Below, piece by piece: positions 31,259 to 63,173 of a stretch of 64,000 bases of DNA. The position numbers and the translations under genes are program-made. The DNA is from Hypanus sabinus. Taxonomy: Eukaryota. The notes under the pieces are model-generated. The model saw only the letters and a list, made by a program, of their open reading frames with translations. It did no database searches and was not told the DNA's origin. Position 1 is the first letter of the stretch. The number at the start of each line of letters is the position of its first letter. The stretch spans positions 115,072,001 to 115,136,000 of the forward strand of contig NC_082715.1 in the NCBI RefSeq assembly GCF_030144855.1, read 5' to 3'.

Positions 31259-32224
31259 GTAAGTACTGATCACATAGATCCATTGAGTACAGAACTCAGG
31301 CCCTTTGCCTCATTAGGCCATGCCAAGCAATATGCCCATTGAGCTAAACCCATTTGCTCGTATCCCTCTAAACCTTTCCTATCCATGTTCCTGTGGCAAT
31401 CGTTTCCTCCAGCAACCCATTCCACATACTGACAATGACCACCTTTGAATGAAACGATTGCTCATCAGGTTCCAATTAAATCTCTCCCCCTCATCTTGAA
31501 TCCTTGCCTTCTAGTTCCCCAATCCTGGGAACCATTTATGCCGATCACATTCTCCCCACATTCCCATCAGCTCTCCCCGTCCCAGATTTCCACTGCTCAC
31601 CTAGACAGAGAGCACCTGACATCAGAACTGAACTCCGGCAACTGGAGTTGTGATGCATCTGCACCACCAGCTGTGTCACAGAAGCACCTCTCAAGATATT
31701 GCACGTTTCATCAACCCGTATATCAAAAAAGTGATTATCAACCCCAGAGGAACGTCAGAACTTTAGTCTTCAGCAAGTTCCACTTTCAACAAGCTCCTTA
31801 TTAATCACCCACCTCTTACATGATTTTCTTGCCCTATTTCTGTGTTGCCTGGTTCCTCAAATATCCTTGCTTTGAATGAACCTGCTGTCAACTCTCTGGA
31901 ATGGAAAACATGAATGGTTTATTACTTCTAAGTGAAGAAAATTCTTAATTCAGTGCTAAATGGCTTACTCCTGACTCTAAGATTGTGTATGACAAACAGT
32001 TAGAAGTACCACTAGGCTACTGGCCCCTTCAAACCTGTGCTGTCATTAGTATGATCATGGCTGATCTAACTTAGCCCTCAGATGTCCCTAATCTTTCAAA
32101 AATTTATCTATCTCTACTTTAGATACATCTGACAATGTAATTTCCCAAGTTACAGCACATTGGATCAGAAAATTCCTTCTCTTAGGAGATTTGGGAAGAC
32201 AAATCAAGACAGTAGGTCTGGTTC

Positions 32225-32800
32225 CTAGGAATACAAGTACATGGTTACACAAAAGTGGCATTGCAGCTAGAAAGGGTGGTAAAGAAGGCTTTTAGCATGT
32301 TACCCTTCATGAGTCAAGGCATTCACTATAGAAGTTGGAATATTATGTTGCAGTTATACAAGACATTGATGAGGCTGTACCTGGAATATCGTGTTCAGTT
32401 TTGGCCATTCTACTAGAGAAAAGATGCCATTAAGTTAGAAAGAGTGCAGAAAATATTTACAAGGATATTACTGAGGACTCAGAGGATTGAGTTATGGACA
32501 ACAGTCGACAAGCTGGGATTTCATTTATCGGGGGTGATTTTTATGGAGGTGCATAAATTCATAGGGGTCTAGGAAGGTTGAATACATGTAGTTTTCTTTT
32601 TTTCCAGTGTTGTAGAATTCAGGTCGAGAAGTCATAAGTTTGAAGTGAGAGGGGAGGGATCTAATAGGGTGGTTTGCATACAGAGTGAGCTGCTTGAGGC
32701 AGGTGCATTAACAACATTTAGAAGGGTCGTGTGAAGGCAAATGGGCATCTTGGTCAGCATAGACCGTGGGGCTATAGGACCTGCTTCCATACTGTAATAC
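32225..32800 (+). mobile_element. Old degenerate CR1 3' fragment (a similar relic lies at ~19257-19640)
   Basis: Nucleotide similarity to the 3' part of the 24826-27574 copy (gtggtaaagaaggctttt...ctggaatatcgtgttcagttttgg). Confidence 0.7.
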
Positions 32801-34461
32801 TATGAGAAATTTCTAGATAGATTGGTTTTAAATGATTGGCCCTGATCTTGAAACTTGTTTGATTTCAGATTCTTCCACTCGTGGAAATATTCAACCTCGA
32901 CACTGTCATGCTCCCTTAAGATTTTGTATATTTCATTAGGTTTGTTTTCTAAACAGTGACCTCTAGTTTTCAGATATGGAAAACAGCCTTACTGTATATT
33001 ATAGTTTGTGTATTTTCACAAAATGTCCTCCCCATCTCTGAAACTTTAAAGAATAGAGATCTAATCTACTCAGTCTCTCATGACACGAAAGACCCAGCAT
33101 CCCAGGAATTTGTTTGATAAATCTTTCTGTCACTCCCTTGGCTAGTACAAATGCAGTGGGCTGGTTAAAGTCTAGACTCCTCCTCTGATGATACCACCTC
33201 TGTCCAAGTTTGGGAGCCTGTGGTGTATTGTTGCAGGTGAACCAGACGTGTACACCATTGCAGCAATTCCTTGACACTCCCATAGAATGCTACTCTAACC
33301 TGTTTCCTAGGAATTTGGACTGTGGATGACGGGATGGGTCAGTTATGATCCTTAAGGTTATGTTACACCATTGTGGGAACCTTCAGGAGAGGGAAAGGCA
33401 CCACTGAATCTGAGGTAACTGTCTTTTTATTATGATTTCTGTTTCAGTTACAGCTAGGAGCTCAGACCGAGATAAAACTATCAATTTGAGATGGAGCAGG
33501 GACTTGTATTATCCTGATGGTGTTCAGAAAACACTTTCAAAGAAGGAAACCTGTTTAGTGATAGTTTATTGACATCTAGCAGGTATGGTCACATCCCACC
33601 TGAGTCTAGATCTCTGACCCTTGCCTGATAGGTCTGACTAGTACCTGGGTACCACTAAAACTGTAAGCCCTTGGGCTAGGACTAGCTGTGGCCTGATTTC
33701 TGTTTTGTTTTGAGCAGATCTTCAGCCCTGGTCCATGTGGTTTATCCCACGTGCTTTGAAGAACAAACCTGGAGCCCTGGTGATGCAGAAGCTGACCTCA
33801 CCCTGTCTAGTTAAGTGGTAGTAATGTAGAAGTTGTGTCTGTTACTGCTCTCCTCCAGCTTAGAACGTGAGAACAGCACAGAAACAGGCCCTTCAGCCCA
33901 CAATCAGTGTCAGACGTGATGCCAAATTAAACGCAATCTCTTTTGCCTGTTAGTGATCCATATCCCTCTATGTTCATGTGCTTATCCAAAAGCCTCTTAA
34001 ATGCCACTGTCATATCTGCCTCCACCACTACCGCTGGTAGCTCATACCAGACACCTACTACTTTCTGAAGTTAAAAAAAATATTGCCTCGCCCATCTCCC
34101 TTGGACTCTCCCTCTCACCTTGTATGCATGCCCTCCAGTTCATCCCCTCACCCAAAATTCTCCACACACTATACTTCCTCATTTTGTCTATCTGTCAACT
34201 CTCGTCATTGTTGTCATGTTAATACAAGTTCTGCCTATTTGCAGTCAGACTGATTCTCTAGCCCCTCTCTCAATTGCTGATTCCATTGTATATGTAAGAA
34301 TGTACTCTGGACAATAGCATGAGAATACTACTTAAAAGTTTTACCTGTCTCACCCGTCCTTACATAACTTCGTAAGGAATTGACTCCAGCCAATAGATGC
34401 CATTGATAGTAATTTTTTTTACAGAAAGAAAATAGTAAAAATATACATTTTCAAATCCCAC

Positions 34462-34483
34462 TATTTACATAAAGTGCTTTCTG
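34462..34483 (-). promoter_or_regulatory. Lefty 3' UTR miR-427/430/302-family site adjoining a Pumilio element
   Basis: mRNA sense reads CAGAAAGCACTTTA (34483-34470) followed directly by TGTAAATA (34469-34462). Confidence 0.6.
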
Positions 34484-34557
34484 AATTTCATTTCTGCTTT
34501 CATAGGAGATTTAAGAGAAATAGGTTTCAGGTGTTGTATAGTTCTTTGACGTTGCTG

Positions 34558-34879
34558 CTATATGACCGAGACATTGTTGGTGGTGCAGCCACACTTCTCG
34601 GTGATCATGTTGGGGAACTCAGCCACCTCGATCTCCGTGTAGTTGCCCATCTTCATCAGGTACATCACAGGCAGCGAAGTGCTCTTCACCCCCACACAGC
34701 TCCTCTCTCCATAATCAAAAGGCCACCGTGGCTGCTTGCAACCCCCAAGGCAGCGAAAGGCCTGGTAACCAGGGGGCTCGATGATCCAGTACTGGGTCCA
34801 CGGCAGGTCCCGGAAGCTGATGAAGTGCTCCTGCCTGCAGCATGTCCTGCCTTTCTCTGCACCACAGTCACCAGTGCTC
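34558..34879 (-). CDS. LEFTY: Lefty exon 4, TGF-beta cystine-knot domain (GDC...CCRQEHFISFRDLPWTQYWIIEPPGYQAFRCLGGC...SC...FPNMITEKCGCTTNNVSVI*)
   Basis: Lies within ORF 34558..34899. Lacks the dimerisation cysteine and extends beyond CxC, both Lefty hallmarks. Total CDS 1089 nt = 362 aa. Confidence 0.96.
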
Positions 34880-35937
34880 CTGGATGTGATAGAACACAAA
34901 TACTGGTTACCGAGTAAAAGCTAAGTGGGGAAAATTGTTTCGATGCAACAAATTAGTTTGGCTAGTTAACTGAATCAAAAGCAGCTTTTCATACTCTTTT
35001 CTGACGTGAAGAAATGTCCTTTTAATACCAATATGCAGATGTCATAGGATCGTGTAAATGACCTGAGAGAGAGGCTCTCACAAATGGCAGGAGAGCAGAT
35101 TAAGCAACTTTCCAGTCAGCAGTTAGCTGTCTACTGATGATCTGAAAAGAGTGCAGTCTAAATTTTCTGTAGGGTGTCAGCAGGAAGGCCAAGTTTTTAT
35201 TCATGAAACTTGATTGAACTAGTCTGGAAAAAAAGGTGTCAAGAATTGTATACTATTGTGGTTCCATGCAGTTAACTGAAATTGTGACCAATATAAATAT
35301 TCCTGATCTCTTAAACTCAGTTTCACTGTTGAGTTTCAAAAGATAAATGTCAATCAATTGATTGTGTTATCAGTCAACTGATAGAGGGAAACTCCACGCA
35401 TTCTTATAAGAACTGCAAGACTTTTAATTCATCTTGTAGCTGAGATGAGGTAACACTGTACTTCCAAATATAACTTTCAGCCCTGTGTTCCAGTGTGTAG
35501 ACCCCTGGTTAAATGGGAAGTTGGCATAATTCCTGTCTCAATAATTAACTTTGAAGTGACTTGGCAGAAGTAGAGCTTATTGTGAGTTTGTAGTAATTGC
35601 TTTTGTCTTGCTCTCTACTGGCTGCCTGAAACAAATTTCAGGATGTATGTCAGTGATAATAAAACTGATTCTATTTTGATTGTGGTAACAAACAAGAGTT
35701 TCTACCATGTTGAAAATAAAATGTGGCAGCTTTGTTAATACTGTGCGCCCTATCTATTAGATTTTAATTATTTTGTGGCAATGACTATATAGCTTAACAT
35801 AGGATGTAAAGTTAGACTATGCCTGTTTAATTTCAGTGCAGTAAAGTTAATGATTAATTTTGATTATCAGAATAAGCTGTGTGGGGAGAGAGACAAAATT
35901 GGCTATTGCCCGAAAAAGTTCCATAACAAAGACATAC

Positions 35938-36174
35938 CCATATTCTTCAAGGTTGAGAGTATAGAGGACTAATTCTGGTTTGCTCAGTACTTGGTCAGCA
36001 GTGCTTTGAGTGGTGAAGTGCACCAGTTTGGCCAATTCAGCTGCGTAGCTGCCCATGCGCTCTGCCTCAATCCAGATTTCCAGGTGCATGGGCGTGTCTG
36101 CATTCTTCATCCAGTAGTACACGGCCTGTGTGACGTCCAAGCTTTCCCACCCAGAGTCGAGGATAGGAACCAAC
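35938..36174 (-). CDS. LEFTY: Lefty exon 3 (LVPILDSGWESLDVTQAVYYW...KPELVLYTLNLEEYG)
   Basis: Lies within ORF 35847..36173; gccag| acceptor and GG|gtatgt donor; 237 nt. Confidence 0.95.
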
Positions 36175-37802
36175 CTGGCAAATGATGCAAGGCAGAAAGT
36201 TCATTAGTCGATTAATTTGCCTCTTCCTTTTGCACAGTTAAAGTTATTGTGCTGAACCAGTGCTAATTGGAATGGTTACTACGAACAATGTTTGATGTAC
36301 ATTATTATATAAAGTTGAGTAGTCACAGAGTTATGCATCATAGAAACAGTCCCTTTGACCATGTCTTTCCAGGTGCCTTCCTGAGTCAGCTCCATTTGCC
36401 TTAAGAACCTGAGAAACAAAGGATACAATGTCTGATTTACTGTTGCTTCACCGCCCCCCCCAACTGTAATAGTCAATTATTTCTCTCAATTTTTCTTGGA
36501 AAATTGTTAAGGATGTTGCAAATGGATAATTAAACTTAAGCAATAGGATAAGAAGCTGGGTGGTTTGCTCTTCAAAATGTGAAACAACCGTTCAGTCTAA
36601 GCCATCTTTTCACTGCAGGCTTGCAACTTTCTTCCTTGTGTGTGTCCAAGAGCTCTTATTTTAGCTGGTCCCACTATTCATTTGGGATTGGATTCCATGT
36701 CATAAGTTTGCCAAATGAATAAGGTTCTCCCATGTTCTCATGTTTTCTTCAAAGGATGTCTTTCTCGAGTTTATTTTAAAATAGTGTCCCCTGAACCTGC
36801 TGTGTGCAAATTGTGTTTAAGTGCCATCAAGGTTCAGTTTTAATACTGATTTGACTTAAAAGTCATGGTAATTGATCCTGGGTGCCACTGTAAGTATCCT
36901 TCACTGATTCCATTGTGGGTGGAAGCGAATAAACTACTTGGGTTTACTGCTGCTGATTGCAATCCTATTCTATTAAACTTGAGGGCAGGGTTGGTTCCAG
37001 CTGCTGTGCTCTGCAACTCATAGATCTTTGCTTGTAAGGCAGCTGTGAAGAATATGCATTGTGTGGAGCTGCTGTTTCAAAAGCAGATTGAAAACATAAT
37101 TTTAAAAGTCAGTTTCTACATGAAATTTTACTTTTGAATATTTTGTTCTATTTTATTAACATTTATACATTTCCAGGCATGTATGTGCAGATGGGTACAA
37201 TTGACAGGATGTTATTATGTGCATCCTACGACATGCAATAGAAGTAGGGAAGTGGGTGGGTGGTGGGTTGCGGAGAACAGCAGAAATTAGAGGGAAACAT
37301 CTGGACTCCACAACACCAGATTGTTGTTTTGCTGTGGTGTATAGCCTCCCCCATGAGGAGAGTACATGTGGTGAGGCCTGTGTGGTTTGGAACTGAAACA
37401 AGAAGTGATCTCATTAAAATATATAAAATGTTGTGATGAGATCTCATCTGGGAGACCGGGAATAACCATCACAGTGATAAACTGCCCTTTGGAAGAGGGA
37501 CTAAAGCTGGAAGTTTCATCTAAAGTAAATTTAGTGTAGTGGTGTTACAGTAGGTTGTGTTGTCCAGAGTGACTGAAGCAACACAAAAAGTGGTGGAAGA
37601 ACTCAGCAGGTCAGGCAGCATCTGTGCATGGAAGTGGGCAATCAACGTTTCAGCTCCAGATCCTCCCAGAAAGTTAATGTTTTGGGTCATCTCTACCCCA
37701 AATGTCAACTGTCCATTTTCCTCCATTAATGCTGCCTGACCCACTGAGCTCCTCCAGCTCTTCTATTAGAGATAAAATCCCACCCTGAGTTATTTTAGAA
37801 TT

Positions 37803-38235
37803 CAACATAAGAATGTAAGAAATAGAAGCAGGAGTAGGCCATTCGGCCCATCGAGCCTGCCCCGCCATTCAATAAGATCATGACTGATCTGTCAGTAAAC
37901 TCAGCTCCATCTGCTTGCCTTTTTCCCACAACCTTTAATTCCCCTACTATGTAAAAACCTATCTAACTGTATCTTAAATATATTTAGTGAAGAAGCCTCA
38001 ACTGCTTCCCTGGGCAAATAATTCCACAGATTCACCACTCTTTGGGAAAAACAGTTTTTCCTCATCTCCAACCTAAATCTTCTCCCCTGAATCTTGAGGC
38101 AATGTCCCCTAGTTCTAGTCTCACCTACCAATGGAAACAACTTTCCTACTTCTATCTGATCTATCCCTTTCAAAATTTTGTATGTTTTAATAAGATCCCC
38201 TCTCAATCTTCTGAATTCCAGAGAGTATAGTCCCA
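37803..38235 (-). mobile_element. CR1 LINE 3' fragment in Lefty intron 2
   Basis: ORF 37901..38329 contains YSLEFRRLRGDLIKTYKILKG...TRGH...FSQRVVNLWN. Confidence 0.85.
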
Positions 38236-38579
38236 TATTTTTTTTAAAATTTAGTTTTATTTGGAATGGGAATCTCTTTTCATCGTGATTGCCCATAGAA
38301 GTTGAAGATTGTTGTAAAAACATTATCAATTAGGACCTGACTCATATAGAGACAAAGTCTTCAGCCCACCATGTCCACGCCTACCTCTACAATCATATTT
38401 GTGTTAATCCCATGACCCTTTGACCTGCTTATTCAAGTGCTCATCTAGGTACATGTTGAATGTTGTTACTGTCCTTACTTCCACCGCCACCTCTGGCAGC
38501 TTACGCCCTCTTTTAACTAATGTCTACCAGAGATAAAACCCAAGGAGTTTGTCCTACACTGACATGTTTCCTTCCTATA

Positions 38580-40540
38580 CACACAAAATGCTGGTGGAAC
38601 TCAGCAAGTCAGTCAATGTCTATGGATGGGGAGTAAACAGCTGACACTTTGCCTTGGAAAGGAAGGGGCCAGAAGCCAGAATAAGGTAAGAAGATGGGGG
38701 AAGTAATTCAAGCTGGCAGGTGATAGGTGAGATCAGGTTAGGGGGAAGGAGGGTAAGTAGGGAAGGGGTGAAGTAAGAAGATGGAAGATAAATAGGAGAG
38801 GTAAAGGCTGATGAAAGGAGGAATCTGATAGGAGAGGAGAGTGGACTATGGAAGAATGAGGAGGAGGATAGGAACCAGAGTGGGATTGGCAGGTGAGAAG
38901 AGAAGGGGCGAGAGGGTAACCAGAATGAGGACGGGTAAAGGAGAGGGGAGAAACTGCTGGGAGTTGGAGAAACAATGTTCATGCCATCAGATTGGAGGCT
39001 ACCAGATAGAATGTGAAGTGCTGCTCTCCAACCCATTTAGCCTCATCATGGTAGTCGAGGAGGCCATGGATAGACATTTCAGAATGGGAAGTCAAACTCA
39101 AAATGTGTTGCCAATGGAAAATGGTGGAAGTTACTGAGAATGATGTGCTGGATATGGATGCTTGTGGGATGGTAGGTAAGGACAAGGGAAACCCTATTCC
39201 TGTTATGACGGGAAGATGGCTGAAGGTAGATATGCAGGAAATCGGAGGAAATGCAGGCAAGGGCAGCATCACTCATAGTGGAAGGGAAACTCCATTCTTT
39301 GGGAGGAGAAAAGGACATCGCAGATGTTCTAGAATGAAAAGCCTCCTGAGAAAAGATACGATAGAGACTGAGGAACTGAGAATGGAAATAGCATTTTTAC
39401 AAGTCACAGGGTAGGAAGGGGTAGTCAAGATAACTGAGTAAGTAGGTTTGTAAAAGATGTCAGTAGATGATCTGTCGCCAGAGATAGCAGAAAGGGAGAG
39501 AAGTGTCAAGAGATGGGCAGCTAAATTTGAAGGCAGGGTAGAAGTTGGGGGCAAAGTTGAGCTCAGCATGGACCCAGGAAGCAGCACTAATGCAGTCATC
39601 AATGTAACAGAGAAAAAATTGGAGGGCATGGACTGTTCCACGTGATGAAAAGGAGGGTAAAGCAGGGGCCAATGCGATTGCCCATGGCTATACCATTGGT
39701 TTGGAGAAAGTGGGAGGAGTTGGAAGAGTTAAGCCAGGTGGAGGGAACTGGTTAGGTCTTCTTGTTGTGACAGAAGCAGAGTGCTTTGAGGCCTTTCTGA
39801 TAGGGACTAAAGTGAAAATGAGGTGATCCAGGCCGGGGAACTGAAACTGACTGAAGTGATGAAGTGACATGGATATAGGTGGGAAAGGACTGAGCCAAGA
39901 GGGTTAAAATGGAGTTGAGGTATACTGATACAAGCTCAGTGGAGCAAGAACAGGTTGAAACAATAGCCTTACTGGACAATCAGGTTTGTGGATCTTGGGT
40001 AGGAGGCAAAAGTAAGGGAACTGTGAGCTCAGTGGCAGTTGATGGGAGATCTTCAGAGTTGATGAGGCAGAGACGGTGTGGGAAACAATGACCTGATACT
40101 CCTTAGTCGGGTTTAGTGCAAGGAGTAAATAAGAGGAGATGTATGAGAGCTGCTGTCCGGCCTCAGCAAGATAGAGATCACTGTTCAGATTAAAACAACC
40201 ACCCCCCCTTCCTGTCAGCAAGTTTGAGTGAAGTTGGTATGGTGAGAGTGAGAGTGGAGGACAAGTGTGCTCAGAGAGGGTTAGGTTAGCTCTTTTCTTC
40301 ATTCTCCCCTCCCCCCATCCATCCAGCCACCTTCCCCTCACTTTCTCACCTATCACCTGCCTGCCTGTACTCCTTCCCCACCCTGCATCATCTTATTCTC
40401 GCTTCTGCCTCTTTCCTTTACAATCCTGCTGTAGGGTCTCAAACTGTTTATTCTGCTGCCTGCCTAGCTGAGTTCCTGCAGGATTGTGTGTTATGTGTGT
40501 GCAGTACTCTGGATTTCCAGTATCTGCAGAATCTCCAGTT
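38580..40540 (-). mobile_element. Penelope-like retroelement, decayed, in Lefty intron 2
   Basis: - strand relics LLPKIHKPDCPVR, YIDD, STDIFYKPT, NRVSLVLTYHP and a GIY-YIG-region HCHDEA-like motif; flanked by inverted terminal repeat copies. Confidence 0.78.
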
Positions 40541-40639
40541 TCCCTCCAGACATCAGTCCATAAGGCGTCTTCTGCTGTAGCCGATCTTTGTCAGCAACAG
40601 ATGGCAGTGCTTACAGGTGAAAGCAGCTATATTTTTAAA

Positions 40640-41800
40640 AGTAAACTCGAGATTCTGCAGATGCTGGACAAGAGCAACAATTAAATAGTCAACATTTTGG
40701 GCTGAAAACCTTCATCAGGACTGGAAAGGAAGGGGGGAGAAGCTGGAATAAGGTGGTGAGAGGAGGGGAATGAATACAAGCTGGAAGGTGATAGGTGAAA
40801 CCAGGTGGGTGGGGGAGACAGCATGAAGTAAGAAGCTGGGAGGCGAAAAAGTTAAAGGGTTGGGAAAGAAGGAATCTGATAGGAGAGGGGTGTGGACCAT
40901 TGGAGAAAGGGAAGTGAAGGAGCACCAGGGGAAAATGATAGGCAGGTGAGGAGAAGTAACGGGACCAGAGTTGGAACTTGGAAAAGAGGGAAGGGGGAGG
41001 GGCAAATTACCAGAAGTTGGAGAGATTGATGTTCATGCCATCATTTTGGAGGCTACCCAGACAGAATACTGTATAAGGTGTTGCTGCTCAAACCTGATAG
41101 TAGCCTCATTGTGGCAATGGAGGAGGCCTTGGGCAGACGTGTTGGAATGGGAATAGGGATAGGAATTAAAATGGTTGGTCACTGTGAAATCTAGCTCTTT
41201 GTAACTGGAGCAAAGATGTTTGACAAAGCAATTCCCCATTGTACATTAGGTCCCACCTCTACAAAGGAGGCTGCATTGGGAGCATTGGATATAGTAGATA
41301 ATCCCAAAAGATTCACAGGTGAAGTGTTGCCTCGCTGTTTGGGGCCCTGAATGGAGGTGAATGAGCTTATGTAGCTCTTGTACTGGCAGAGTTAAATACC
41401 AGGAGGGAGCTTAGTGGGTAGGGATGAACAGACAAGGGAATCAGGAAGGGAGTGGTCTTTCCATAAAGCAGAAACTGAGGGGGAGGTAAAGATGCGTTTG
41501 GTGGTCAGGTCCTGTTGAAGATGTTGGAAGTTGCAGGGAACGATGTGCTGGATGCAGAGGCTCACGGGGTGGTAGGTGAGGACAAGAGGAACTCTATCCC
41601 TGTTAAGGTAGGGTGAGGACGGATGTTCAGGAAAAGGAGGAGATGCAGGTGATTGCAGTGTAAATGGTGAGGAAAGGAAAACCCCATTCTTTGAAGGAGG
41701 AGGACATATCTGATGTCCTGGAAAGGAAATCCTCATCCTGGGGACAGATGTGGCAGAATCGAAGGAACTGAGAAAAGGGAATGGCCTTTTCACAAGCTGG
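40640..41800 (-). mobile_element. Second Penelope-like 3' fragment; other fragments at ~28515-29130 (+) and ~59180-59580 (+)
   Basis: DRVPLVLTYHP (ORF 41392) and NHFNS...GLLHCHNEATIRFEQQHLI (ORF 41033). Confidence 0.78.
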
Positions 41801-42126
41801 GTGTAAAGATGATCATGGGAGTCAGTATGTTTATACCAGATATCAGTAAAACAATATGTTTTACAATAACCTTAATGGTGATTGTAGCTTTGCACTTTAT
41901 TTGTCTACCTGCACAGCTAGCTTTGTAAGTGAAGCTCATTGCCTTGAGAACAAACTTGTATTTGTCAGTTTAAATAATGTGGTGATTATTTATTGAATGT
42001 TTGTTATTGATTAATGATTGGGGAGGGAAAAGCTTATGGGAAAGATCAATGTTAACATTTTTTAAATTGTCTTGACTCAGCTGTGCAAATCCCTGGATTA
42101 TATTCCAACATTAGACTTGCCCTTAC

Positions 42127-42370
42127 CTGGAGTCTATGAGTGAGGTGCTGTTGGTGCCGTCGGCCAGGGTCTTGACCCAGTACACACTGACCCTGGCGTT
42201 GTTGACTGGCGGGCTGTGTTTCCTGGGTGGGAGCTCCCCCTTGTGGACGCCCTTCTTGAAGAGCTTGAGCTCTGCCATGGTCACCTCGCTGTTGTCCGGG
42301 ATCAGCCCCTTCATGTCGAAAACCAGCCTCTGCCGGGTGGGGCCCGAGTACAGCACGTCTTCGGTTGTGC
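42127..42370 (-). CDS. LEFTY: Lefty exon 2 (GTTEDVLYSGPTRQRLVFDMKGLIPDNSEVTMAELKLFKK...VNNARVSVYWV...TSLIDSR)
   Basis: Lies within ORF 42123..42431; cccag| acceptor and AG|gtaagg donor; 244 nt. Confidence 0.95.
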
Positions 42371-43270
42371 CTGGGGACAAAGAACTGGTTAGTTGGAAGG
42401 TTTTAAACTTCCCTATCCATCTTGAGTACATTGGTTACTTGTATCAGAGGAAAAAATACTAAATTATCTGTACTTCGCACAGTGTGAAACTACGGCCTTT
42501 GTCATCTTTGAATTCCCCCAATCGTTAAAGAAGCTGGGGAGTTCTTGAGTTGATCAGTTGCCAGCAATAAATGTACAGGTTACAGAAACTGGAAGTGCAC
42601 TTTGTTAAGTGCATATCGATTAACTGTTGGGATTGTACTTCAGCTTTGCACTTCACTTGTCCACCTGCACTGACTGTACCACTGTAATATGTATTCTCTT
42701 TTGTATTACATAATTGCCTGGGTGGTGGGTAAATAATCGGTCATTGGTCTATTATTATCACATGTATAGAGACACAGTGAAAGGCCGCTTTGTGCATCAG
42801 AATATAGAGATAGTACAATGGGAAAAAGATAGAATATGATAAACCGAATACCACCACAGTAAACCTCAGAACTCACATGTGACGATGGTTCGAGAACTCT
42901 GGCTGCATGCTTTCCACGTAGGAATTCCCCAACCCTGGTGTGTAAAACCACGTGGGGCATTTTCACCCTATCAATGCTCCTCATGATTTTATACACCTAC
43001 AAGGTCCTCCCCTCAGTCTCCAACACTCCAGGGGAAAAAATCCCTGCCTGTCCATGTAACTCAAAACTACATTTAGTCTGTGGGGCACGGGTGACAATAG
43101 GGAGAAGTGAGCATCTCCCTTCATTACCTATACTGCAACATTCCAGCACAGTGCAACGTTTGGAGAGATTGAGGCAAGGGGCAGCAGAGAGAGATTACAA
43201 GTTAGCACTAGGAAGGGACATAATTGCATTTCTAGTTTCAAAGTCAAAAGCAAATTAAAAACTGCATTAC

Positions 43271-43556
43271 CTGTAATTTCTCGCAAGATGCCGGCCAGGC
43301 TGGGCAGGGCTCTCCGCTTCCTCTCCTTCTCCTTGTGCCGTTTTAGCATGGACATGTACTTGTTCCGGAGATGTGTCGGCACCACCACCTTCTCAAGGTC
43401 CCTCTTCTCCATTTGTGGCACTTCACTTAGGCCAAGCTTGTGAAGCATAGCGTTCTTAATGCTGTCGTGGGAGACTCCACTCACTGGGGCTGTCTGCAGC
43501 ACCAACAGAACAAAGACAGGCAGCATAGTGGTCAGGCTGGTGTTGATTCTGATCAT
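43271..43556 (-). CDS. LEFTY: Lefty exon 1: signal peptide and prodomain with RKRR convertase site (MIRINTSLTTMLPVFVLLVLQTAPVSG...RKRRALPSLAGILREIT)
   Basis: Lies within ORF 43128..43616. RRALPSLAGILR is characteristic of non-mammalian Lefty/antivin. Donor ACA G|gtaatg. An alternative ATG lies at 43526. Confidence 0.92.
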
Positions 43557-43699
43557 CTCCTTGAAGCAACCCCCTGGTGGTTGAGGAATTTTACCCCTTG
43601 TTATTGGTAAAATCACTTTTTTCTTTCTTTATGTTTCCTTTCAATCTTCTGTGCTCTTTCTCTCCTCTGTGCTCTCTCTATATATGATTGCTGTTGATC

Positions 43700-43855
43700 T
43701 TTTATAGTAGCAGCTGCCATCCAGACTAAGCAGATTATATAAAGACTGCAGACATCAAACACCACTGGCTCAATCACACCATTCAGTTTGATTGACACCT
43801 TCCAGGTTATGTGCAAATTGCAAACTAACCAGGGGGATGGGCTAATTTGCAAAAA
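43700..43855 (-). promoter_or_regulatory. Lefty proximal promoter: TATAAAA plus SMAD, T-box and octamer-like motifs
   Basis: TATAAAA on the - strand at 43706-43700, ~145 nt upstream of the ATG; CAGAC/AGAC at 43722, 43743, 43749; TCACACC 43774-43780; TGACACCT 43793-43800; GTGCAAAT 43811 and ATTTGCAA 43845. Confidence 0.6.
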
Positions 43856-46800
43856 ATATAACATATTTCCAACCTCCAAACTCGTCTTTGTGCAATTTAT
43901 TACAACCACAAATTATGTGCACTTGTTTCTTTTATTTTGGCCATCTCTCATCTTTGCCCTGACTGATTATTTGCTTTTAGACTGGTGACCAATGCTCTTT
44001 AAGAGGTGCAGTGCTGCAGGACAACTCTTATAGGGCATACGTAACTGTCCCAGATGCTTTGAGTGTTGCCAAAATGGGTAAAGTACAAGGCAAAGAAAAC
44101 TGTGGGCACTCAGAACAAATCAGTTTTCCCCATTTTGACAATGCAGGATTGTGCAGTGGAGATTTGTGCAAGTTTCTGAGCATTTTCTCAGCAGAGAGTT
44201 TGCTTTAGTCTAATTCAGTTGCAGGTGCCATAGAATAAAATATGGTGTGAGGTGCATCCTGTGGACTGAAGAATTGCAAACACATCCACCTCAGTATCTG
44301 TGAAATGAGCACTAGGAGCTGCTGTAAAATCCAAGCTGCTCAGGCTGCTCCTCGGAGTTGATGATACTTTCCATGCAGTTGTAGCTGTCCCTGTGTGACC
44401 CACGAGTAGTTAAGTCAGGGCATTTAACTTGACTATTCAGATTTCTCTGCAAGATGCTACAATATTGTTGCTAGTCAAGTTCCCACTTGGTAGAAGGTGG
44501 CAGCAGCACATCCATCCCACCGGTCTCCCAAACGGTTGTCTGTGTGTACCAGATGTCCGTAATTCAGGCATTTGTAACCTGGGGAGGATCTGTACAGATA
44601 AACATAAATGCTCTTGCCCATAGCTCCCTTAAACTCCTTGCCCTCAACAGTCCGTTTTAGTCCCAAGCTGGAGCAGCCTGACAGGCCCCTCATTATTCTG
44701 GTGAATATAGCAGCAGCACGTCTTTCTGGTGTTTTACAGCAACAGCTCTCCTCAATGGGAATAGCAGTCACAATTGGCATTAGGAGGGCTTTATGACAGC
44801 AATCTGCATCAAGATCAAGAGCAGTACATAAGTTTCTGACATTGTTATTGTAGCAAGAACTTGTGGAGCATTAGAACATTCTCATTGATAAAATCATCAG
44901 ATATCAACTGTTTTGTGCATTGTAAACCTGTCACTGAAAGTACATTTCCAGGATAACTGGCTTTGGTGGTTGACCAATTATTCTTGCATGTACTGAGATG
45001 CAGTGAAAATCTTATAGTGTGCCATCCAGAAAGATCCTTGTGTGCATAAGTACATTGAAGTAGAACTAAAGGAAACACAATAGCATGGAGATGGTGTTAC
45101 ATCACAGAGAAAGTGTAGGGCCATGACATGATAAAATGAAAGATCAAGAATTTGTTCTGTATGAGGATCTTAATACAGTAGGAGAGAAGCTGTTCATGAG
45201 CCTGGTGGAAGGCGTTGTGTTCTTAAATTTTGTATCTTCTGCCTGACTTAGGGGAGGGGATTTGGCAATGGGCATTTAACAGGGGAGGGAGTGACCATGA
45301 TGGCAGGTTCCTCGATTATGTTGGCTGCTTTTCTGATACAGCCGGAAATATTGGCACAGTCTGCGGAGGTAAGGCTGGTTTTCATATAGACTGGACTGGT
45401 ATATTTGCATTGTCAGGTTCTTGTGGTCTAAACAGTGGAGAACCCTTTATTCTGCAGGACTGGGGAGAAAGGTAAAGGAACCAGAATGAGGAATTACAGG
45501 TTAGTGTGCATTAAGTCTAGAATTGCGAGGCAGACCATTGGGTCCATCTGCTCTGACTGAGAGTGCCATACTCTTTAATCTAAACATTCAATGTACTCCA
45601 TTCATACTTCAGCTGAAATCCATGTGTCAGTCACCTCTTCTACCCCCTGTGTTAAACAATTCAAATGCTTCAAATGGTTTCGGTGTGTGTCTGTCCCAGG
45701 AGAGAGTGGAATATACAGTTACAAACTCATTCCATTCCTCAGCCGAATGTGGTGCTAATGTTGTCAGACTTAATTCTTCATTAAAGTAATTAAGTGCAGA
45801 GAAATAGATGGCTGGCAGCAAGTTAGGAAGTTGCAAATCAATGTACTGAATGAAAATTGCTGCTTTAGTATTGCTCAAATATACAGTGTTCCAAGGACTA
45901 GACCATCTAATGACAGTCAGTTTCAAATCAAGTTTTTAAAACTGTGGGTAATAAAGATCTGCTTAATGCTTTGCCAATGGCATACGTGAATGTATTCAAT
46001 GAACGTTTGCACTGTACAAAGCCACAGAGTGGTGGAATTAATGGTTGTCGACTGGGACACCAACCGTTGTCCATTCCCCCGTTGGCCCATGGACTCCATC
46101 AATGAGAGAATCCATCTTTGTGAGGCACATTTCTTATTACTTTCCATCTTCCATTTAAAATCCTTTCCTGACCTTTCTCTTTCATCTCCATGGACTCTCT
46201 CTATCCTATATCCTTGGAGATACCTGCAGTCCAAGTTTAACTGCTACGTCATTGATGGGACTGCCCTCATACTCCCAAGGGGCAAAGCTTTCAAACTCAG
46301 TTAAACTGTTAACGCTTATTTCCTTAATCAGAGTTTCTGCCCCTGTAAGGCCCAGTGGTGGTCTTTGTTTGATAATGGCTCTATGAACTATTTCTGGGTG
46401 TTCTGCTCTGTTACAGGTACTACATTAGTGTGCATTGTTAATGACCCAAAGTGATCATATGGTGGTTCTCTTCAAAATTCCGGAAAAGTTTTATTGAGTG
46501 GTTCAATCATCACAAACTGCATTTCCTTTTTTGAGTGGGGGATGGGGGATTAGAAAATGGGCAGTGAAAAATAACCAGGTACCTCCTGTGAGGTATCTGT
46601 GGACTTATGTCTCTGCCAGGGGTCTTAATACGGAGAGGAGAGCACAGGGAAAAAAACTTGAGTTTCAAAATCATTGTAAACTTGGAAGGGGGGGACTGGT
46701 TGGGAATTGTTCAGCAGCTTTGGGCTTGTCACTGAGTTGCTCATCAGTGTTAAGTGACAAACTACATGCTGATTGATTAATTTTCCTCAGTATCAGAGGA

Positions 46801-48730: not shown

Positions 48731-49189
48731 GATATCTGTGTCATCATCATGTGAAATCAGTCACTGCCTGAATATTCATATACTTATGTAACAGCCCTTT
48801 AGACTCTGCTATTGTGTCTGCTTCCACCACCACCCATGGTGGCCCTTCCCACGAGAGCATTCGTTTTATCGAAAGTCCTGGAGTAAGGATCAACAAACTC
48901 ATTCCTACCCAGACAGCAGGGGAATCAATTTTAAAATTTAAACCTCTTGAACCTAGTACTTGCAATCTCTTAAGCCACACAATTCAGAAACATTAAATGT
49001 TGGCCTTGTAACTTTTAATTAAAAGGTTGTTTTAAATGCATCTTGCCCAGCCACTTTGTTTGTCAGAGAGAAGCATCTGTGAGGAGAAAACACTGCCCTT
49101 AAGTGTAATGTTTTCACAGAGCTTGTTTGTATCCAGTGTTGTTTTTCACTCTGCATCCCAAAGTCAAGTCAGAATCAGTTGCCATCCAA

Positions 49190-49310
49190 ATGTCAGACTG
49201 GGTGCTAATGTCTCGCAGCCTCTCATCAAACACAGGAGTGATGTTGTGTATTCTAGGAACTCCAGGTTTAGAAGGTGATAATTCCCGAGTAGCGGGATAT
49301 GTGGATTGCA
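49190..49310. promoter_or_regulatory. Candidate Nodal-responsive (ASE-like) Lefty enhancer with two FoxH1 sites
   Basis: TGTGTATT 49245-49252 and TGTGGATT 49300-49307, same orientation and 55 bp apart, with CAGAC (~49194) and GTCT (~49210) SMAD elements, in sequence I do not recognise as repeat. Confidence 0.55.
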
Positions 49311-52300
49311 AGCTTTCTCAGGGCAATGCTTATCCTTTTGGATCGCAGAATTTGCCAGCAGCCTTTGTAATGCAAACGTCGGAGTCAGCAATTGTAACTG
49401 TAGAAACTGCAGTGAGTCCATGTGTGCAACCAAGGAAAGATGTGTGGAGTCTCAGCTCCAGCTGTTTAACAGATAAATATTTAGTATACAAATTGTGCAA
49501 TCCTAGGCAGGACCTCTGCAGCCACCATACTCCCACAGCACTGTTCCATGGTTCAAGTTGAGGTTTTCGATGTTGCTGCAGATAAAATTCATTTAAAAAA
49601 ATGTAAGAGGGAAGAAATATTTACACCCCAAAATGGAACCTTGACCTATTGTCTGCCTTCAATGCATTTTCTCTGTATGCTCTGTTCTGCGATTATTTTC
49701 CCCTTGTACTGCCTTGGTGTTTAATGTGATGAAATGATCTGTTTGGATGGTAAATTGGTCTATTATTGCCATTTGTTCCAAAGTTCAGTGGAAAAATTTG
49801 TCTTCCTTACTGCACATACAATTATCGTATATCTTATTGTACTGGGTGATTGTTTACTAGTCTTCTAATAGAGGGACCGAAGCATGCAAGTAATTTTTTC
49901 ACTATACCTCGGTGCAAGTGACAATAATAAGCCAGTGTATTAGTTTAATTTATGATTGGTGTAAGTGGATGATTAATGTTTGGCATGGAGTAAATGGACC
50001 GAAAGGCTCATTTCTGTGCTTTGTGACTCTAATGACTCACAACCCAGCACTCTAACGTGACCAATTAAAGTTAATGTTGCAGTATTTAACAATAGTGCAG
50101 TCAGTTTAGCATTTACATTTGTTAGGAGGCGTAGCTTGTAGGAAATGCAGAGATTAGAGTTTTATTGTAAAGGAAGTTGCTGATAACTGTTCTCATCAGA
50201 TCTAAGTCTATAGGCAATTTGTCATACCTATTTACTTGTTATCTTTCCACAGTTGGCTGAGTAGTAATGGATTACACTTTATAACCCTTAATTTGTATTT
50301 TGTTTCTGCACATTATTTCATGAATACACTGAACCTCTGTCTTGTCTATCATTAAACATCCATGCTAGCAATCTGGAGTAATAAACTGAGATTGTCTTCA
50401 TTGTTCATGCATCAAAGTTGGAAATAGTTTGAATGTATACCTCTGGTCTGAAAATAGATATGCATTTTGTGAGGTGGAGAGGGAAGTTCTATTTAAACAA
50501 ATATTAATTAAGCCTAAATGTGCTACATTAAATTTGTTTATTATTGCCATATGTAGTAAGGTGCAATGTAAAACATTGTTTCCCTTGGCATCCATACAGA
50601 TCATTTCATCACATCAGTACGATGAGGTAGTGCAAGGGAAAGGCAATAAATGATTCAGAATATAGTGTTACTGTAAGTGCAGAGCCTTGACGAGGTTGAT
50701 TATGAGTCAAGAGTCCATCTTAATGTTTAATAGTCTGACAACAGCAGGAAGAAAGTTATCCATGAGCCTCATATGGTACATGATTTATACCTTCTAAAAG
50801 CTTGAGTGTGTTGGGGGGGAGGGGGGGTTGATGCAGAAGAAAGTATCTAGGGTGGGTAGGATCATTGATAATGTTGACTGCTTTACTGAGGTAGCAAAAA
50901 GTGTTAAAATGCCACGGAGGAGAGGCTGGTTTCAGTGATGTGCTGAGCTGCATCCACAACTTCCTGCAGTTTCTTGCTGTCTCGGACAAAGTAGTTACCA
51001 TATCAAGCCATGAGGCATCCGGACAGAATGCTTTCTGTGGTGCCTCTGTAAGCTTTGTCTCCTGATGAAGTAGAGGAGCTGGTGCACTTTGAAGTGGCTG
51101 GTTTTGGTACCAGGTCGCTCAGCTGACAATGAATTACACTCTGTTTCTCTTGGCCCTTATTATATGATCCAGTGATGTTGAGTCAAGTTCAGTGAAATCA
51201 CAGTCAGTTGACCTTGGCTGTAACACCAGGCTGCTGCAAACATGCAGTTGAGTTGGTCATATGGATAAGTAATGTACAGGTGCAAAGAAAAGCTTACTTG
51301 CATCAGCATCACAGGTACATTGCAACTTTCTCAAAGAAAACACAAATTATATAGAGATTTTACAGGAGAATGCAAAGCAAAAGCAAAAGTACATTTTAGT
51401 CCAAGTGGTTGAAGGGATGTTGCTGTTCTTGGACCTGGTGGTGTGGGACTTCAGCCTTCTGTCCTTCCTGCCCAGTGATAGCTGCAAGAAGATGGAATGG
51501 CGATGTTTGGATGTTGCTGCCTTAAGACAGTGCCTCCTGTAGATATGGAGGAATGTGCCCAAGGTGTATTAGGCTAAGTCTGCTCCTCAGTTCGTGTGCA
51601 TTTAAATTGCTGTACTTGGACATGATACAACTTGTAAGGATACTTACAATAGTACATCTGTAGAAGTTTTTATAGAGTATTTGGTGACAAGCTGAACCTC
51701 CGTTTTTATGTCAAAGGAAAAAGTTGGTCATTTCCATCTGCCCTGTCTATTTTTTTTAAATCACGGTGAACACTATCACCTAGTATTTGATATCCATCTA
51801 ATTTTTCCAGATCTTTTATGTGCTCACATCAAGGCAGAATCTTTGTCTGCATTATTCCCTTTGATGTACTGTGCAGTGGAAGAGTTGGGATGTTGTTGCT
51901 ACATGTGTTCTGTAGGCAGGAGACTGCAGATGCTGGAATCTGAAGGAACTCAGCAGGTCGATGCAGAGTTTTGACCCAAAATGTTGACAATTCGTTTCCC
52001 TCCACAGATGCTGCAAACATGCTGCTCAACCTGCTGGGTTCCTCTGGCAGATTTTTTTCTCGCTTGAAGTATTGTACAAAGTTCTGATCCCCTCGCTGCA
52101 AGAAGGGTGTCATTAAGTTGGAATGTGTTCAGAAAAGATTCACTAGGGTGTTACTAGGTCTGGGGAGTCTTGAGTTTTAAGGAAAGACTGGATAGATTGG
52201 ATTTTTTATGCCCTGGAGTGTATGAGGCAAGTGCAATTAAAACATTCAAAAAGTATTTGGGCAGTTACATATATAGCAGATGTTTAGGGAGCTTTTGGGT

Positions 52301-52512: not shown

Positions 52513-52515
<3 letters not shown>

Positions 52516-52590: not shown

Positions 52591-52595
<5 letters not shown>

Positions 52596-52620
52596 TTCCA
52601 TTTAGTAGGTGAGTCTAGAA

Positions 52621-57220: not shown

Positions 57221-60200
57221 TCTAATCATCAACCAGCTAGTGCGTCTTATTCCTGTATGCCTCCTTATCACCATCTGAGATTCTGCCAACAATAGCAGTT
57301 TCATTTCCAAATTTATAGATGATATTTGAGCTATGCCAAGCCACACAGACAGAGTGGTGGGCTAAGCACACATCTGTGAGGTGCACCTGTGTTCATTATC
57401 AGTGAGGAGGAGATGTTGTCATTGATCTATATTGACTGTGGTCTCCCACTAAGAAAGTCGAGGATCCTGTTGCAGCAGGAGGTACAGAGGTTTAGGGTTT
57501 GAAGCTTCTAGACTAGTTCCAATAGGATGATGGTATTGACTGCTGAACTATATTTGAAAAGCAGCAGGTTCAAGTCTTTGCTCAGGCAGGAGTAATTCTA
57601 ACAATAACCATGGTAGTACTCCATGGTAGATTTGTGTGCTACTGGTTGGTAGTTGTTAAGATGGCTCACCCTGCCTCTGGCACTAGTATGATTGCTGTCC
57701 TTTCAAAGTCGGCTCAGACCGCAGCAGTGAGAGGTTGAAGGTTTTCTTGAGCTTTCCAGCTAGCTGGTCAGCATAGGATTTCAGTACACCGTAGTGGCCT
57801 GACATCTTGTGCCTTGGTCAGGAGGAATGCCACTAGGTTCAAGAACAGCTACTTCAGCTGTTTGGTTGTTGAAATGCCTGCACAACCCCAATAGCTACCT
57901 CAGTACAGCAACACTGTGACATTGTTTTATGTTGTTCTGATTGTGTTCTTTCTTGTATAATTTAATTTAATTTGTTTTTCAGTATGTTTAATACTCTGTG
58001 CCTGTGATGCTGCTGTAAGTTTCATTGCACCTCTAAAGACATGTACATGTGAGGAATCTGACTTTGACAGGGTATAAATGCTATGGAAAATTAGCAGTGA
58101 GACGTAGAGTCATATAGCATGGAAACAGGTCCTTTGGCCCAACTCGTCCATTCAAGGTTCAAAGTAAATTTATTATCAAAGTACATCATTGTCACCACTT
58201 ACAACCCTGAGGTTCACTTTCTAACCAGCATACTCAGTAAATCCATAGAATAATTACCGGAACAGAATCAATGAAAGATAGCACCAACTTGGGCTTTCAA
58301 CCAGTGTGCAAAAGACAACAAACCACAAATACAAAAGGAAAGAAATAACAATAATAAATAAATAAACAATAAGTATCGAAAACAAGATATGAAGAGACCT
58401 TGAAAGTGAGTTCATAGGTTGTGGGGACTTTTCAATGATGGGGCAAGTGCAGTTGAGGAAAGTTATCTCCTTTTGTTCAAGAGTCTGTTGGTTGAGGGGT
58501 AATAACTGTTCTTGAACCTGGCGGTGTGAGTCCTGAGGCTACTATATACACTTTTCTGATGACTGCAGTGAGAAGAGAGCATGTCCTGGGTAGGGGGTTC
58601 CTTGATGTTGGATGCTTCTTTCCTGTGATGGTGTTTCAGGTAGATGTGCTCAGTGGCGCGGAGGACTTTACCCATGATGGACTGGGCTATATCCACTACT
58701 TTTTATAGGACTTGCTGTTCCATACCAGGCTGTGATGCAGCCAGTCAATATACTCTGCACTGCACACCTATAATGTTTGTCAAAGTTTTAGATGTTATAT
58801 CAAATCTTCACAAACGCTGAAGGAATTAGAACCACTGACATGATTTCTTAGTAATTGCTCATATGCTGTGCCCAGGACACAGGACAGATCCTCCAAAATA
58901 ATAACAACTAGAAATTTAAAGTTGTTGACCTTCTCCTCTGGTACTTTGATGAGGACTGGGTTGTGGACCTCAGGTGTCCTGCTCCTGAAGTCAATAATCT
59001 GCTCCTTGGTCTTACTGACATTGAAAGGTTGTTTATGGCACCACTCACTCAATCTCCCTTGCATATGCTGATTCATCACTGTCTTTGGTTCGGCCTACAA
59101 CAGTGGCATCTTCAGTAAACTTGAATACGCTTCAAGTTTGGCCACAGAGGCATAATAGAGCAGGGGGCTAAGCACCCAGCCTTGTATTTCATCTGGGTAG
59201 CCTCCTACCTGATGGCATGAACATTGATTTCTTGAACCTCCAGTAATGCCCCCCCCTTCATTATTCCCCATTCCCCTTTCCCTCTATCACCTTATCTCTT
59301 TGCCTGCCCATTGCCTCCCCCTCTTTTTCTTTCTTCGATGACCTTCTGTCCTCTCCTATCAGACTCCCCCTTCTTTAGCCCTGTATCTCTTTCACCAATC
59401 AACTTCCCAGCTCTTCACTTCACCCCTCCCCCTGATGGTTTCACCTATCACCTTGTATTTGTTCTTCCCTCCCCCCCCCCCCTTAACTCTATTCATCTTT
59501 TTTTCAGTCCTAGATGCTGCCTGTCCTACTGAGTTCCTCCAGCATTTTGGATGTTCAGCACCTGCAGACTTTCTCTTTCTTGTTATAAAATAGATGTCCA
59601 CTTTTCTGAATAAGCCTCTGTAAAGCATTTTGTAGCATACATTAGCTACCATGTTGTAGAAGTTTGTAATGAGAAAGCTGTTGTCAGTAGCGTAAGCACA
59701 CCCAAGGGCCAGGGGCTGTATAGTGAAACAAGCTGCAGGAGGGATCGTCCACCAGGTGGCAGTCACACCGCGCAGGGGAGCAGACTCACTGACTCCCTGA
59801 GTCAGTGCTTGCAGCAACTATTTCACAAAGCGGCCTGTGCAGGAATGCGTTCTAGACTTGGCCAGTCAGGAGAGGAAAGAAGTAGAAGCAGAGGAGGTCA
59901 ATTGGCCTCTTATGCCTGCTCTATCTTAAATCCCCTTTTTAAAAAAATCACTGGTGGTAACTGCACAGATTCTTTTGGAACACTTGGCTTTATAAAGCTT
60001 TTAAGAGTATGGTTTAAGGTGAGGGGGAAATTTTTAGAGATGTGGGGTATTTTTTTTAACACTAATAATTTGTTAGGAGTGGTGGACATTAAATAGCTTT
60101 TCAATAGGCATGTGAGTGTCCCGAGGATGGAGGGAAATGGGTCAATGTGCAGCGAGGTAGGTTTAGTTTAGTCAGCGCAAACGTTGTAGACAGAACGACC

Positions 60201-60977
60201 TGTTCAGTCATTACATTGGGAGCAGTTAGAGATGTTGGAATCTTTGCAGTAACTGCCAAGTTGGGGGGTAATAAGGAGTGGGATTCCGCTGACTGTCCTT
60301 TCTCCTGTCTGGATCCCAGCACAATTGTAGTCTCACCCTCCCCATCCATTTGACCATAGTAAGCTTGGGTGGCTTAATCTGATTTATTATCACTTATATA
60401 TGATGTAAAGTATTTATAAATACTGCAAAAAAAGACCCGAGGCACGGTTCATGGATGGTTAAGAAATCTGTTGGCAGAAGGAATAAAGCTGTTCCTAGGT
60501 TGTTGAGTGTGCGTCTTCAGGCTCCTGTACCGCAGCCTTGATGGTAATAATGGGAAGAGAATACGTCTCAGATGCTGCAACTTTAAGGCACCACCTCTTG
60601 AAGATGGCCTTGATAGTGAGGAAAGTTGTGCCTGGGATAGAGCTTATCCTGGGTCCAACGTATCAATGCAGTTATAAAGTAAGCATGATAGCAGCTATAT
60701 TTCATTAGGAGTTTGAGGAGATTTGGTATGTCACCAAAGACACTCGCAAATTTCTGTACATGTACCATAGAGAGCATTCTAGCTGGCTGCATCACTGTGA
60801 TATGGAGGAGGGGGCACTGCACAGGATTGGAGTAAGCTGCAGAAACTTGTAAGTAAGTCAGCTACATCACTAGCCTCCTTAGCATCCAAGACTTCTCCAA
60901 GGAGCATTGCCTCAGGAAGGTAGCATCCATTATTAAGAACCCCCATCACCCAGGACATGCCCTCTTCTCATCAGGGA

Positions 60978-61056
60978 CAGGGGTTCCCAACCTTTTTTAT
61001 GCCATGGGCCAATACCATTAGGCAGGGAGTCCGTGAACCCCAGGTTGGGAACCCTG
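60978..61056. mobile_element. ~79-bp hAT-type MITE, second copy, inside a LINE fragment
   Basis: CAGGGGTTCCCAACC...GGTTGGGAACCCTG termini; similar to 28190-28268. Confidence 0.7.
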
Positions 61057-63173
61057 GATATAGGGAGGAGGTACCCATGAACACTACCTCACTACTTTTT
61101 TTTGCACTACTTACTTAATTTAACATTTTAAATATATATATAAACTTACTGTAATTTCAGTTTTTCCGATATATTGCAATGTTCTGCTGCCACATAACAA
61201 ATTTTATGACATATGCCAGTGATTTAAACCTGATTCTATACAAATTTGTATCAGTCTATGGTGACATACCAAATCTCCTCAAATTTCTAGTAACTTGGAG
61301 CCACGAGCATGCCTTCTTCATGATTGCATGGGATTACTTGGGATAGGTCCTCCAAGATGTTGATGCCTAGGAACATGAAGCAGTCCATCCCTTCCACTGC
61401 TGACCCTGGAATGAGAACCGGCGTTCTCTCCCTTCTAGCTCCACGGTCACTTCATTAGTCTTGCTGACAATGACACCGTTTAAGCGGATCTCAGTAGTGT
61501 GCGCCTCCTCATCACTATCTGAAATTCTTCAGTGGTGTGGTCGGTGAACTTGTAGATGGCACCACGGTTTATGGATTGAGCTTGGAGCCTGCTGGCTCAG
61601 TGCACTCATCTATTTGCTGAATCCATTCACAGCTGCACCAGGGAAGCTGCTGCCTGTTGGAATGCTATGGGTACAGATGTCCTTCAGTGTCAACAGGTCA
61701 CCTAGGTTCCTCTTAGTTCTCGGGAGAAATATATAGAGAACAGTCTGAAAAAGTTAGTGTTGTACAGAAAGGACACATCCTTTGGTCTGTTTCATCCACG
61801 ATGACCAAGATGGCTATCTAAGCTAGTCCATTTTGCCCATGTACCTGTCGGAATGTCTTTTAACTCTTGTTATTTTAGTGGTGGATGATTGGTTTGGTGG
61901 CTGGATACAGCCAAGTCACAGTGGTTCTCAGGGTTGGGCCCTGCAGTCTCGTCTGTAACTCAGTGAGTAGCACTCCCTTTTAGATCAGAATTGCCGTCGG
62001 TTAAGTCCAGAGGTTTGAACAATAATTGTAATCTACAGTACCTGTGGGCAAGCTGCATTCTTGGGCATGCCATCTGTCTCAGGACATGTTAAACTGAGGC
62101 CCCACTGCTGTTCCTGGGTGAACTTAGAAGATCCTATGGAATTCATATTGCCCTTGGCAAATGCTTGCCAGTATCATTGAAGTAAGAGGATGTAAAAACT
62201 GATTCTGGTTGTAGAGACTGGTCACTGATTCAGGAGAGACTCTGAATTGAAAATGAAAGTTAGAAACTGTTGGAAACATTCAGCAGGTCAAGCAGTATCT
62301 GTACTAGAAGAAACATTGAATGATTTGGATCAAAGGCCATTCACCAGCTTCAGACATGTGAAATATGAGGAGTGATCTTGCAGAAGTATCCTTGGGTGGT
62401 GTGACAAGGGAAATGTTGACAAGAGACTGCAGACACTGGAAATCCAGAGCAGTACACAGATGTTGGATGGGTCAGGTAGTATCTCTGGATGAAATGGACA
62501 GTCAGTGTTTCGAGTTGAGACCCTTCACCTAGATTAGGCTCTATTGGTGGAAGAATCTCAAATGAGGATCATAGTTATAAGACTGGGAGGGAGGGCAGTC
62601 TTTTGAAATTGGGAGTGTTTAAAGGGAAGGGAATGATTTTTAAGCATTGGAGAATTGGATCATTATTATTGTCACATGTACTGAAAAGCTTTTGTTTGCA
62701 TGCTATCCAGACAAATCGCTCCGTACATTAGTAGAAAGAAAACGTAATGTAGAATAATGTGTGGTTACAGAGAAGGTTCACTGCAGGCAAAGTGTAAGGG
62801 CTCTGCAGAAGTAGATTGGGAGATGTTCTGTAGCACATGAGCAATTCATTCAAGAGTCTTATAGCAGCAGGATCGAAGCTGTCCTTGAGCCTGCTGGCAC
62901 ATGCTTTAATTTTTTTTTAAACCTTCTGCCTTATGGGAGAGGAGAGAAGAGAATGGTCAGGGCAAGATTGAGGAACCAAGGGACCCACTCCTGGTACATT
63001 AAATGTAAAGCTAAAAATGTCCAAGTAACACTACTTCAATGCAAGTGATTCCCTCCCAACCCCGAAACAAGTGAGTCTGGTTATAATATAACGCTGGCGA
63101 CTCTGACTCCTCGGCTCCTTTCCATTGCCTCTGTTGAATGACTGTGACTTTCCCTCTCCCTACCCCTCCACAG

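Follow-up and report, generated by a model that had tools for sequence, protein, structure and literature searches.

A Lefty gene nested antisense in the last SDE2 intron of the stingray Hypanus sabinus, probably of ancient origin

Classic cases of antisense genes nested in introns include OMG, EVI2A and EVI2B, which occupy an intron of NF1, and F8A, found in F8 intron 22. Here we describe a nested pair in the Atlantic stingray Hypanus sabinus, in which Lefty, a developmental signalling gene, is located inside the last intron of SDE2, which encodes a broadly expressed splicing and replication-stress factor. The pair lies in a 64,000-nucleotide stretch of NCBI RefSeq contig NC_082715.1 (115,072,001 to 115,136,000, forward strand), hereafter the window, and positions are counted from its first letter. 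As in the NF1 and F8 nests, the host is a larger, broadly expressed gene, and a single intron of it accommodates a complete gene that has its own promoter and lies on the opposite strand, but the guest here is a tightly regulated developmental signal, and conserved candidate enhancers also reside in the host intron. The stingray pair is very probably real and ancient, with a nest that arose a single time in a common ancestor of chimaeras, sharks, and rays.

The closest described system is the same feature. In PMC12344233 (Dev Dyn 2024;254:887, sections 3.5 and 3.7; zebra shark in figure 6), LeftyB lies wholly in the last Sde2 intron, antiparallel to its host, in all chondrichthyan genomes scanned, with LeftyA about 60 kb away as measured between translation starts. 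A local duplication followed by insertion in the Sde2 intron was proposed there for the cartilaginous-fish lineage. Our literature search found the nesting addressed in no other paper. The initial annotation of the window, made from its letters alone, had asked whether the nesting was already reported; it is published (section 3.5), and it is also annotated in RefSeq.

We saw this arrangement in stingray, skate, zebra shark, and chimaera. The text of the paper includes neither Hypanus nor a stingray, and the paper does not treat conserved elements, selection on the terminal exon, or truncated isoforms. By its account, the Sde2 exons that flank the nest are the ‘third and fourth (last)’, whereas the gene seen here has seven coding exons and hosts Lefty in intron 6. 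The present result confirms a published, annotated feature and adds little to it, namely the seven-exon numbering with the nest in intron 6, a conserved non-coding element (CNE3) that is inverted in stingray, and predicted isoforms without the C-terminal exon in three other species.

In tetrapods, Tmem63a, Lefty, and Sde2 are linked (PMC12344233). This linkage, in mammals Lefty1-Pycr2-Lefty2-Sde2, resembles the stingray locus in its neighbours, with H3F3A divergent from SDE2 and Lefty by the SDE2 3′ end. The tetrapod Lefty, however, is downstream of a complete SDE2 rather than inside it, and the mammalian duplicate pair has Pycr2 between its copies.

SDE2 and Lefty in the stingray window

The whole coding sequence of Lefty, on the minus strand, falls within a single plus-strand SDE2 intron at 31259-63173. 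When seven plus-strand blocks of the window are spliced, all with GT-AG junctions, they make a 1,293-nt frame of 430 amino acids (aa), which is the same in 430/430 residues as the Hypanus sabinus ‘splicing regulator SDE2’ of NCBI (P0152). Exons 1 to 5 are located at 15075-15275, 18619-18736, 20968-21079, 23619-23788, and 23916-24024. Exon 6 (30892-31258) ends with CAG followed by GTAAGT in phase 0, exactly where the initial annotation had put its end. Intron 6, the last one, is 31,915 bp long and hosts the whole of Lefty together with 19.6 kb upstream of it. Exon 7 (63174-63389), the terminal coding exon, follows a long pyrimidine tract with CAG then GAA at its acceptor and closes with a TGA stop, and an AATAAA occurs beyond it at 63712. 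The same blocks were matched in tblastn with 15 vertebrate SDE2 proteins as queries.

Exon 7 encodes the SAP-like C-terminus, SDE2_2C, as its piece matches Pfam PF13297 with an E value of 9.2e-29. It had been named the only SAP-domain exon, on the same strand and in the same phase as exon 6, and this holds: no second SDE2_2C copy was found by tblastn in the 64-kb window, where the next best match has E 0.69. Among the matches listed, SDE2_2C is at or near the C-terminus in 150/150 homologues. The central domain PF22782 is matched by the exon 4 piece (E 2.2e-6; 28.9 bits at a cut-off of 26.4), and the full protein is listed with it. The spliced product also has an N-terminal ubiquitin-like domain with a GG-K processing site, and the identical P0152 carries PF22781 (Sde2_N_Ubi_vert).

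The annotated start codon of SDE2 at 15075 puts 34 residues ahead of a conserved MEVWVRG start at 15177, the second in-frame ATG in exon 1. SDE2 proteins of most other species align from the second ATG onward. The true start may be 15177.

Lefty (LeftyB in the 2024 nomenclature) spans 34558-43556 on the minus strand, with its four coding exons at 43556-43271, 42370-42127, 36174-35938, and 34879-34558. These limits were homology-guided and set by conservation against skate, chimaera, and zebra shark; each of the four has a conserved counterpart in skate, shark, and chimaera. TGFb_propeptide (PF00688) is matched by the pieces of exons 1-3 and TGF_beta (PF00019) by exon 4. The mature domain, as translated, reads ...GERSCVGVKS..., with the CC of other TGF-beta ligands replaced by one Cys, and the C-terminus extends eight residues beyond CGC, ending in ...KCGCTTNNVSVI. 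A single Cys in place of the CC pair, by which the interchain cysteine is lost, and an extension after CxC are recognised traits of Lefty. With the exon-sized query of exon 4, a homologue search returned unnamed fragments at 59-68% identity. An Atlas look-up gave TGF_beta clusters, and the structural neighbour of the top match is ‘left-right determination factor 1-like’. The name Lefty comes mainly from position and from PMC12344233.

The public gene table of GCA_030144855.1 agrees with both genes. It gives SDE2 a coding span of 48,315 bp that encloses a minus-strand gene of 368 aa with TGFb_propeptide and TGF_beta. After an offset of 5,074 bp, the public ranges are 15075-63389 and 34558-43556 exactly. 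The complete four-exon Lefty on the opposite strand, as initially annotated, is thus matched to the base at its ends, and its position with its upstream region antisense in the last SDE2 intron was reproduced in four other chondrichthyan assemblies.

The nest in other cartilaginous fishes

A minus-strand TGF-beta gene is annotated inside SDE2 in little skate Leucoraja erinacea (locus L001), and the same nesting is annotated in elephant shark Callorhinchus milii, a chimaera (L002), where a histone gene lies upstream on the minus strand, and in zebra shark Stegostoma tigrinum (L003). In a fragment from cloudy catshark Scyliorhinus torazame, an annotated 30.8-kb gene consists of exon 6 and exon 7. 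When the window was compared by blastn with the skate, elephant shark, and zebra shark loci, every SDE2 and Lefty exon was found in the same order and orientation. The comparison of gene order and strand that the initial annotation had called for thus shows a collinear nest in these three species and none in bowfin, ostrich, amphibian, or amphioxus.

Downstream of SDE2 in elephant shark, at a distance of 5 kb, lies a Kindlin/FERM gene (L002 42798-47520) and not a second Lefty. LeftyA in this species may not have the position known from zebra shark, where the two Lefty genes are described as head-to-head and 60 kb apart.

Conservation extends to noncoding sequence upstream of Lefty. CNE1, the Lefty proximal promoter block (43654-43848, minus strand), is collinear in skate, zebra shark, and chimaera, and contains a TATA box, TATAAAAG, at 43706-43699, ~145 nt upstream of the Lefty ATG. 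CNE2 (45688-45868, strand not assigned), 2.1 kb upstream of the ATG, is also collinear, with identity of 79% to skate and 75% to zebra shark. CNE3 (49109-49390, strand not assigned) spans ~280 bp at 5.6 kb upstream of Lefty and shows conservation in skate and zebra shark and, in part, in chimaera. It has two invariant FoxH1-type motifs (49245-49252 and 49300-49307) 55 bp apart. All three elements and the TATA box are inside SDE2 intron 6.

The counterparts of CNE3 are located at L001 48261-48543 in skate, L003 43335-43591 in zebra shark, and L002 30880-30967 in chimaera. Its orientation in stingray is reversed relative to all three species, while all other conserved blocks are collinear, which points to a small inversion of this candidate Lefty enhancer specific to the stingray lineage.

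Origin of the nest and use of exon 7

The seven-block structure of SDE2 was recovered by tblastn from amphioxus to birds, including stingray, skate, chimaera, zebra shark, and bowfin. Because this structure is common to them, the host intron is, by sequence comparison, an old, homologous intron 6. Its length is 31.9 kb in stingray, about 36 kb in skate, about 34 kb in zebra shark, and about 18 kb in chimaera. In contrast, it is 3.1 kb in ostrich, where SDE2 spans 9 kb, 0.7 kb in bowfin, and 0.6 kb in amphioxus, and no Lefty-like sequence was found inside SDE2 or within 10 kb of it in these three species. The amphibian SDE2 annotation shows no nested gene.

Exon 7 keeps its frame, acceptor, and stop in all of stingray, skate, zebra shark, and chimaera (4/4). 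Its dN/dS is 0.05-0.10 among the four chondrichthyans, with synonymous sites near saturation, which indicates that the exon is under strong purifying selection. A splice that bridges the nest and links exon 6 to exon 7 (31258 to 63174) is supported by the annotation, the matching frame, the canonical splice sites, and this selection.

Three other explanations were weighed. A misjoined or misoriented contig might have put Lefty between SDE2 exons 6 and 7; intron 6 is repeat-rich, and the evidence is at the assembly level rather than from a check of reads. However, the window contains no N runs (0), the exons and conserved elements are collinear base by base across species, and the order and strands are the same in four independent assemblies (skate, zebra shark, cloudy catshark, and chimaera). 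Because the assemblies of these four other species agree, a misjoin is very unlikely, and we give an assembly artefact next to no weight. The nest could instead be older than cartilaginous fishes, an ancestral state of jawed vertebrates or vertebrates from which bony vertebrates released Lefty secondarily. In its favor, tetrapods also have Lefty next to SDE2 (PMC12344233), and no cyclostome locus was found among the representatives searched. Yet SDE2 is compact with a short, empty last intron in amphioxus, bowfin, ostrich, and amphibian, un-nesting would require an exact excision that restores the same strand orientation, and the published proposal has the nest gained within the chondrichthyan lineage (PMC12344233), so that an older nest appears quite improbable. 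The initial annotation had offered both origins. Its movement of Lefty into the intron, as a gain in the cartilaginous-fish lineage, is favored because the homologous introns of those four outgroups are short and empty, while its older gnathostome state is disfavored.

Another explanation concerns SDE2 transcripts. In stingray, SDE2 might mostly end before Lefty, either at another terminal exon or at a poly(A) site in the intron past exon 6; exon 7 would then be rarely used or part of another transcript, and the two genes would seldom overlap. NCBI predicts SDE2 isoforms X2, which lack SDE2_2C, in the sawfish Pristis pectinata, the electric ray Narcine bancroftii, and the sawshark Pristiophorus japonicus (P0160, P0194, and P0205), and in the window, reading through the exon 6 donor meets a stop after 27 codons, with ATTAAA signals at 31475 and 33926. 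On the other hand, exon 7 is strongly constrained with its frame and acceptor kept in all four species, its domain is the extreme C-terminus of every full-length homologue, and the listed stingray SDE2 model includes it. An X2-like alternative terminal exon was looked for in 31259-34558, and no tail-like exon was found there, which speaks against the splicing of exon 6 to another terminal exon before 34.5 kb that the initial annotation had set as its refuting alternative. We consider an early end of most stingray SDE2 transcripts highly improbable.

Several points still weigh against an ancient nest that SDE2 transcripts cross. The predicted X2 isoforms end past exon 6 in short tails of their own, and because of these predictions, some SDE2 transcripts may not cross the nest; such isoforms may terminate within the Lefty-bearing intron, through other last exons or through intronic polyadenylation. 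The 31258-to-63174 junction is drawn from annotation and conservation rather than from transcript reads. The homology-guided Lefty has 362 aa and the annotated one 368 aa, with the same start and stop and one internal splice site that differs. The exact 368-aa model was tried, but many splice combinations fit it, and the conservation-supported 362-aa model was kept. When a cyclostome SDE2 was sought, the 20 representative clusters were of teleosts or invertebrates, so that the closest outgroup does not polarize the change. The copy presumed to be the source, LeftyA, lies beyond the window and was not seen.

With these points considered, the simplest reading of the compared loci is that the nest was gained once, ahead of the split between chimaeras and the shark-ray lineage. 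One inversion cannot yield the layout because exon 7 retains its strand, an argument already made in the initial annotation and sound. The most likely and most economical route is a local duplication of Lefty whose product inserted into the SDE2 intron in inverted orientation. Duplication plus inversion might have left behind an inverted remnant of exon 7; a search of the window and the compared loci for one found nothing consistent. In skate, a weak SAP-exon-like tblastn match (E 0.003) occurs in Lefty intron 3 (L001 30167-30259, minus strand). It was rejected as a relic exon 7, as it is missing at the corresponding place in other species, and is probably due to chance.

Neighbouring features and consequences of the nest

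No other gene was recognized in SDE2 intron 6, where ten open reading frames (ORFs) gave no Pfam match. A repeat at about 37818-38229 has many copies in the skate locus. Coding exons of an H3.3 histone gene (H3F3A-like) occupy 235-3402 on the minus strand, divergent from SDE2. Its ORF at 1658-1924 matches Pfam Histone with E 2.7e-18, and three blocks are collinear with the annotated Callorhinchus histone gene. A conserved block at 11907-12154 is probably an H3.3 5′ exon or promoter. Decayed reverse-transcriptase ORFs (RVT_1, retrotransposons) are on the plus strand at 25252-27384 in SDE2 intron 5 and at 7458-8402 in the H3F3A region.

In our reading, SDE2 intron 6 has grown to 31.9 kb. It contains, antisense, a complete four-exon LeftyB that has a TATA promoter of its own, and upstream of this gene it carries no fewer than three conserved noncoding elements. 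The SDE2 pre-mRNA would be transcribed through the entire antisense Lefty unit before exon 6 is spliced to exon 7. The nest is probably kept because any rearrangement freeing Lefty would cost SDE2 its essential C-terminal exon or cut Lefty off from its enhancers. The pairing has remained stable since chimaeras and the shark-ray lineage diverged, which an estimate cited in PMC12344233 dates to about 400 million years ago.

Transcriptional interference and a regulatory lock between SDE2 and Lefty can be hypothesized, as in the initial annotation. The conserved elements upstream of Lefty in the intron are compatible with a regulatory block, although they do not prove one. More speculatively, SDE2 read-through might tune or gate LeftyB, and the long gene-bearing intron might promote premature SDE2 termination that gives the isoforms without SDE2_2C in sawfish, electric ray, and sawshark. 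We regard this as doubtful, but if true, SDE2 and LeftyB would be a co-regulated unit and not a frozen accident.

The locus illustrates cleanly how a developmental signalling gene, along with its enhancers, can be locked in a housekeeping host across the whole cartilaginous-fish lineage. It is useful for considering how nested genes stay stable, how transcription of one gene may interfere with that of another, and how Lefty duplicates arose independently, and the exon numbering, the inverted FoxH1 element, and the truncated isoforms could feed work on Lefty regulation in cartilaginous fishes.

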